DNA of 64,000 nucleotides from NCBI GenBank assembly GCA_907165135.1, contig OU015569.1, positions 8,122,001 through 8,186,000 of the forward strand, given 5' to 3'. The stretch comes from Oikopleura dioica. Taxonomy: Eukaryota > Animalia > Chordata. The notes under the pieces were generated by a model. It saw only the letters and a list, made by a program, of their open reading frames with translations. It did not search any database and was not told where the DNA came from. The translations under genes and the position numbers were made by a program. This document shows, in pieces, positions 56,328-56,994 of this stretch (position 1 is the first letter of the stretch; the number at the start of each line of letters is the position of its first letter).

Positions 56328-56701
56328 ATGAAGCTTTTTTATGCCTTTTTGACTCTAGGTATGATATTATCCTTGTTAGAGAGGGCTTGTCTGAAAACCG
56401 GGGAAAGTGAATCTAAAATTTTAAAAATCAATTCTTTTCCCACTTCGTTTTTAGAAGATTGCGCGAATTTTAGATAATCCTTATTTTATGTTAACGTATG
56501 TTTAGCTTTTGCCTCGCCTGGATTCTTTGACATGAGTGATTTGATGAGTGAAGACTACGAAAAACGATCTCCTTTTATGGTAATTGTACTTTAATCATAG
56601 TCAAGTATAGTTGTTGTTTTAAGAATGTTCGAAACATGGACAAGCGGGGCCAGTTTCCAATAGAATTGACGCTTGATGACATGTACGATTCACTGATATA
56701 A
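56328..56701 (+). CDS. Putative neuropeptide/peptide-hormone precursor (3 exons, 60 aa)
   Basis: Exons 56328-56358, 56506-56579 and 56624-56701 with canonical in-phase GT-AG introns give MKLFYAFLTLAFASPGFFDMSDLMSEDYEKRSPFMNVRNMDKRGQFPIELTLDDMYDSLI*. AATAAA at 56746. Confidence 0.72.
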
Positions 56702-56994
56702 ATTGCGAAATTCAACTTGCTTATTTTGATACATCCAGTTTCATGAATAAAATGACATAAGATTAAAAGAGCTCTCTGAACTGAGAAGATTTTATTTCGT
56801 GTTATCTTTCCGGGAGAAACCTTGAAATCGAAACTGACTGAAGAGAAGAACGAAGAGCGATGGTAATCCTTAAGGTTAGGATGTAAACAGAAGGGACGAA
56901 TGGAGGAACTTGAAGGAGTAGAGAATGTTACTTTTACACTGATTACACAAATGGCAGAAGAGTAATAGAGCAATATTATTAAGGGCGGAGGATA

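Follow-up and report, generated by a model that had tools for sequence, protein, structure and literature searches.

A candidate three-exon micro-gene for a small secreted acidic propeptide in Okinawa Oikopleura dioica

Introduction

Peptides of the CCK/gastrin/cionin type are released by dibasic cleavage from small secreted precursors and carry a sulfated Tyr in an acidic context. Lineage-specific neuropeptides have been described in Ciona, where CiLF, CiYFV/L and CiNTLP show no similarity to other animal families (PMC6475428). Those peptides are freed at basic sites from small secreted tunicate precursors, and the same kind of release is predicted here for a locus in the larvacean Oikopleura dioica. 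We found no published catalogue of Oikopleura neuropeptides when searching the literature. The OKI2018_I69 annotation of the Okinawa animal was made by AUGUSTUS with RNA-Seq hints and contains 17,260 genes, one per 3.7 kb; the introns have a median length of 49 bp and 11% of them are non-canonical (PMC8008620).

In this work we analyzed a 64-kb stretch of DNA (hereafter the window) and followed up an earlier reading of the letters alone (the original prediction), which had proposed a novel neuropeptide precursor encoded by three tiny exons. We estimate the probability at roughly one half that the locus is a real, unannotated three-exon micro-gene for a small secreted acidic propeptide. At present it is offered as a hypothesis and not as a discovery.

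Materials and Methods

The window was compared with the public OKI2018_I69 annotation. Over 12,001 bases it shows 100% identity to the annotation record (locus L017), which places it on chromosome XSR. A search for sequencing runs that contain the stretch itself found none, only runs under the same species label; of these, three oligo-dT RNA runs and a single-cell run, filed in 2026, were aligned to positions 55900-58000 at 85% likeness.

Chance expectation was estimated by a scan of both strands for ATG-started frames of 50 to 120 codons carrying at most two GT..AG introns, each 35 to 200 nt long. The loose criteria were a signal-peptide-like start, at least two KR/RR pairs, the absence of a second hydrophobic segment, and an AATAAA no more than 100 nt from the stop codon. 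The strict criteria added GTA donors and T-rich acceptors to the loose ones. Block-wise dinucleotide shuffles of the whole window (n = 156) served as the null model.

Results

Annotated neighbors of the locus

The public annotation has no gene model in the interval 55416-56994. On its right side lies the annotated PA-TM-RING (Goliath/RNF13-like) gene Oidioi.mRNA.OKI2018_I69.XSR.g15690 (58888-56995, minus strand), which has nine exons. When the annotated protein was threaded exactly through the window, eight GT..AG introns of 40 to 207 nt were found. The minus-strand frame at 57353-57979 is the RING-finger exon of this gene, and the last coding base is 56998 with the stop codon next. Two mRNA contigs of a related larvacean (L005 and L006) also put the stop codon of the RING gene just below 56998 and extend the 3' UTR to at least 56932. 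Orthologs of g15690 were found in environmental metagenomes and metatranscriptomes with 44 to 83% identity over the full length, and with as much as 97% in the case of a RING-domain fragment. The spread of identities shows that public marine data contain many larvacean lineages.

On the left side an annotated gene for a 237-residue protein (55415-54045, minus strand) is divergent from the candidate, with a spacer of 912 bp. It has no Pfam domain. An internal 27-nt inverted match was noticed in this gene at 55108-55134. The original prediction had described the spacer as comparatively long. This did not hold, as the annotated gaps nearby measure 1.3 to 2.0 kb vs. 1.58 kb here, and gap size was dropped as evidence for a gene because gaps in that range are common in the neighborhood.

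Predicted exon structure and product

Three small exons at 56328-56701 (plus strand) join in phase with GT..AG borders into a 60-codon frame, as the original prediction had it. The model was read and translated exon by exon (phases 1 and 0; introns of 147 and 44 nt), and a local enumeration of spliced frames recovered it as well. Exon 1 (56328-56358, plus strand) opens with an ATG in an A-rich context and reads Met-Lys followed by a hydrophobic stretch (MKLFYAFLTL). It ends in phase 1 with the first base of a split Ala codon, at the donor GTATGA. Intron 1 (56359-56505, plus strand; 147 nt, GC 0.31) has the acceptor TGTTTAG. Its length is divisible by three, yet it carries an in-frame stop at 56475. 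Alternative in-frame donors within it are found at 56375, 56389 and 56407 (GTGAAT). Exon 2 (56506-56579, plus strand) completes the Ala codon, encodes FASPGFFDMSDLMSEDYEKRSPFM and ends in phase 0 at the donor GTAATT. It contains a signal-peptidase-type site (AFA↓SP), an acidic 16-residue stretch, the first KR, and SPFM. Within exon 2 a 12-nt unit is tandemly duplicated in frame at 56532-56555 (ATGAGTGATTTG / ATGAGTGAAGAC), giving MSDL-MSED. Putative intron 2 (56580-56623, plus strand; 44 nt, GC 0.25) runs from the donor GTAATT to the acceptor TTTTAAG, and its length is plausible in view of the genome median of 49 bp (PMC8008620). Exon 3 (56624-56701, plus strand; GC 0.41) is preceded by TTGTTGTTTTAAG and encodes NVRNMDKRGQFPIELTLDDMYDSLI before the TAA stop codon, i.e., NVRNMD, the second KR, and an acidic 17-residue tail.

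The translated exons display the claimed prepropeptide layout: a signal-peptide-like start, an acidic spacer, KR, the decapeptide SPFMNVRNMD, KR, and an acidic C-terminal part. The start passes a home-made rule of the von Heijne type (Lys2, an uncharged hydrophobic run of 11 residues, and small side chains at -3/-1 of AFA↓SP). The predicted signal peptide has 13 residues, i.e., it is short, which counts against a gene. The predicted product contains six Met, 10 acidic vs. 6 basic residues, and two KR sites in the contexts E-K-R↓S and D-K-R↓G. Cys is absent from the 60 residues, and there is no Gly amidation donor before either KR, in agreement with the earlier statement that the central peptide lacks an amidation Gly. 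Both predicted N-termini open with Ser-Pro. In the six-frame translation of the window, SP follows a dibasic site in only 6 of 1638 cases.

The 3' part of the model allows more than one reading. Competing AGs at 56600, 56605 and 56610 lie within intron 2, ahead of the AAG at 56623. If splicing uses the acceptor at 56610 (a 31-nt intron), the frame reads LLF and then stops, so that the precursor would end in KR-SPFMLLF. Unspliced intron 2 reads VIVL up to a stop at 56592-56594, and the precursor would end in KR-SPFMVIVL. Either alternative removes the second KR and the decapeptide; the second KR is present only with acceptor 56623. The decapeptide SPFMNVRNMD depends on this acceptor, one of several possible.

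Splice sites and base composition

The candidate splice signals look credible next to those of g15690. The donor hexamer GTATGA of candidate intron 1 is also used in g15690 introns. A g15690 acceptor, CTTTAAG, resembles the candidate intron 2 acceptor (AAG after a T run), and one genuine acceptor of that gene sits past a bypassed upstream CAG. GC content is 0.39 in the candidate exons vs. 0.30 in the introns and falls to 0.27 after the stop; the corresponding values in g15690 are 0.45 (exons) and 0.30 (introns). A GC contrast of at least 0.09 was seen in 14.6% of chance three-exon loci.

Poly(A) signals and promoter-like motifs

An AATAAA is located at 56746-56751 (plus strand), 45 nt 3' of the stop codon as first proposed, and an ATTAAA follows at 56762. 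The minus-strand AATAAA at 56791-56796 is likely the poly(A) signal of the convergent gene g15690. The two signals face each other 40 nt apart. The candidate and the RING gene would end tail to tail within approximately 40 nt, an arrangement that fits a compact genome.

A TATA-like string TATTTAA at 56272-56278 (plus strand), 56 nt 5' of the ATG, may serve as a core promoter, and a second TATA-like string lies at 56252 (plus strand). In this AT-rich context (33% GC) both are weak evidence; they are better placed than the TATA-like tract near 55941 to which the original prediction had pointed. That tract and the ACGTCA at 55613 do exist, but neither is specific, and their distances upstream of the ATG are 390 and 715 nt. 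Both were rejected as evidence for the gene, being too distant from the ATG and nearer the divergent 237-residue gene. The ACGTCA is part of a small palindrome, TCACGT-CAT-ACGTGA (55610-55624), some 200 nt upstream of where the 237-residue gene starts (55415). This CRE-like motif more likely belongs to the promoter of that gene, if to anything.

Frequency of similar architectures in shuffled DNA

The loose architecture arose at 1.47 loci per shuffled window, and 114 of the 156 shuffles had at least one such locus. Chance alone would thus produce the bare architecture. The strict architecture arose at 0.04 per shuffled window (6/156), a rate to be read with the facts that the criteria were chosen after the locus was seen and that the screen of this genome covered about 930 windows. 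With that many windows, several such chance loci are expected genome-wide. In the real window this locus alone passed the strict test. The shuffle and GC numbers lean towards a gene, post hoc. The interval by itself holds 1759 spliced frames of 50 to 120 codons.

The codon-usage log-likelihood, trained on the long frames of the window, gave the candidate a score at the 38th percentile of the real pieces, which also falls within the top 16% of the spurious frames. The score has no separating power at 60 codons and was rejected as a discriminator.

The scan found one other locus in the window that passed the loose test, at 8663-8019 (minus strand). Its three-exon model encodes 115 residues starting with MRVFRKFAFCVILSASAQ. 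This may be a genuine gene for a secreted protein, possibly one that is annotated.

Search for relatives

At E values up to 10, none of the three pieces examined (exon 2, exon 3, the exon-1 read-through frame) matched a Pfam-A family. The decapeptide has no known motif, and the original prediction had placed it in no known tunicate or vertebrate family. The exon-2 frame (38 residues, 26 of them in the model) had no match at E values up to 0.001 among 1.84 billion representative proteins, a query so short that a diverged ortholog would miss this threshold. A degenerate pattern of NVRNMDKR hit nine loci in JGI metagenome contigs, all of them unrelated chance matches, mostly in GC-rich contigs. 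Three environmental larvacean DNA contigs (L002, L018 and L019) extend 0.4 to 1.2 kb beyond the RING ortholog and have no similar exons; the species are distant, with a RING identity of 52 to 71%. Through the RING neighbor, the only long genomic contig obtained was the window's own assembly; the remaining matches were short contigs of environmental DNA or mRNA, and the candidate was absent from them. There was no paralog within the 64-kb window. Exact look-up of the exon-1 read-through frame and of an antisense 132-codon frame returned no record, and the ESM Atlas feature search gave no usable match. Rfam and repeat searches found nothing that would explain the spacer otherwise.

RNA reads

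A total of 15 reads aligned, all of them partially and almost all with less than 95% likeness. In the RING exon (57914-57941) the reads differ from the assembly at every third base. The third-base differences and the matching in short patches indicate that the runs come from another cryptic O. dioica lineage than the Okinawa assembly (cryptic lineages are described in PMC11067885). The candidate exons received zero reads, but these divergent-lineage runs barely cover even the control RING gene and are unsuited as expression evidence for this genome.

Discussion

We favor, at a probability of about 0.5, the reading that the locus is a real micro-gene missing from the annotation of Okinawa O. 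dioica. A promoter located shortly before 56328 would drive its transcription, which would terminate at the AATAAA at 56746, so that the gene lies tail to tail with the PA-TM-RING gene. A signal peptide of 13 residues, cut after Ala-Phe-Ala, would release a Cys-free and strongly acidic propeptide of 47 residues into the secretory pathway. Its two Glu/Asp-Lys-Arg sites may be cleavable by furin or by prohormone-convertase-type enzymes, and cleavage would yield, besides the decapeptide SPFMNVRNMD, one acidic 16-mer and one acidic 17-mer. Two Tyr in acidic contexts (EDYE and DDMYD) are candidate sulfation sites. What the DNA and the annotation show is the frame, its phases, the signals and the lack of a public gene model; from these we infer the transcription, the exact splice sites used, the secretion, the cleavage and any signaling role.

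The micro-gene has to be weighed against a frame that is open by chance. The 1.58 kb would then be ordinary AT-rich intergenic DNA, made up of the promoter region of the 237-residue gene on the left and the RING 3' end on the right, in which short open stretches between frequent GT and AG dinucleotides were joined by eye. We consider this nearly as likely as a micro-gene. It would account for the ease with which the loose architecture appears in shuffled windows and for the large number of spliced frames in the interval; the uninformative codon score and the adjacent gaps of like size are also in keeping with it. The lack of a model in an annotation hinted by RNA-Seq, the lack of relatives, and criteria set post hoc likewise speak against a gene. 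What a chance frame explains poorly is the rarity of the strict version, GC steps that coincide with the predicted exon and intron borders, splice sites like those of a real neighbor, and a properly placed poly(A) signal convergent with that of the neighbor. These features, together with the in-phase GT..AG exons and the Ser-Pro N-termini, are the grounds on which the micro-gene is preferred.

If the micro-gene is accepted, a narrower case is that it encodes a neuropeptide or peptide-hormone precursor, as the original prediction proposed. A few neurons would make the precursor, cleavage would occur at both KR sites, and SPFMNVRNMD or the acidic, possibly Tyr-sulfated flanks would act on a GPCR. 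The signal-peptide-like start, the acidic spacers, and two dibasic sites that each follow an acidic residue suit such a role, as do the Ser-Pro N-termini. Expression in few cells would account for the missing gene model, and tunicate neuropeptides lacking similarity elsewhere are documented in Ciona (PMC6475428). Against this, the product is without an amidation Gly, a cysteine pair, a repeated peptide motif or a known-family match, and the searches gave no evidence of conservation. Two KR/RR pairs are already part of an architecture that arises 1.5 times per window by chance, and the decapeptide hinges on the use of acceptor 56623. The neuropeptide role is possible and, with nothing specific in its support, we regard it as improbable.

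A different 3' structure would turn a real gene into another precursor. With the 31-nt intron 2, or with intron 2 unspliced, a precursor of 41 to 42 residues would carry one hydrophobic LF-type peptide, SPFMLLF or SPFMVIVL, after a single KR. As a matter of general splicing knowledge, UAG is a better acceptor triplet than AAG, and the triplet at 56610 is a UAG. Of the 1638 dibasic sites in the six frames of the window, one, located at this locus, is a KR followed by SP.M. SPFMLLF resembles the Ciona peptide CiLF-5 SPGMLGLF (PMC12441681 Table S1), and presumable LF-receptor orthologs have been reported in O. dioica (PMC6475428), which fits an LF-type reading. Against it, a length of 31 nt is below the shortest of the eight RING introns (40 nt), the pyrimidine tract is positioned between 56610 and 56623, and LLF is merely the translation of this T-rich acceptor tract. 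The 44-nt intron fits both the step in GC and the open frame that exon 3 presents, and the CiLF likeness was found post hoc with many peptide families open to comparison. We judge the shortened precursor very unlikely. There is an equally slim chance that such a minimal precursor (signal peptide, acidic spacer, KR, and a single C-terminal hydrophobic peptide) represents the first LF-type neuropeptide gene of a larvacean, whose product would be the ligand of the presumable O. dioica orthologs of the Ciona LF receptors; if so, the "Ciona-specific" LF system would become tunicate-wide.

The micro-gene, if real, would add one more orphan secreted peptide to a chordate with an almost undescribed repertoire of neuropeptides and hormones. 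It would also mean that the RNA-guided Okinawa annotation misses genes this small. If the product is a signaling peptide, it would be a ligand candidate for orphan tunicate GPCRs.

Among described systems the Ciona peptides are the nearest for comparison. SPFM after the first KR of the candidate is similar to CiLF-5 SPGMLGLF, and SPGFF after the predicted signal peptide is similar to CiLF-2 YPGFQGLF (PMC12441681 Table S1); these strings are too short to show homology. The Ciona peptides differ in that they were found by peptidomics and are present in several copies per precursor with a shared C-terminal motif (-LF or -YFV). The 60-residue model has no repeat and none of its peptides ends in Leu-Phe; an LF end is found only in the 31-nt variant, where SPFMLLF is followed by a stop.

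The comparison with CCK/gastrin/cionin is of another kind. The candidate differs from these peptides in that it lacks a C-terminal W-M-D-F-amide motif as well as a Gly amidation donor, and it matches no Pfam family. The likeness is one of chemistry only, in that the candidate, too, has Tyr residues placed in acidic contexts (EDYE and DDMYD).
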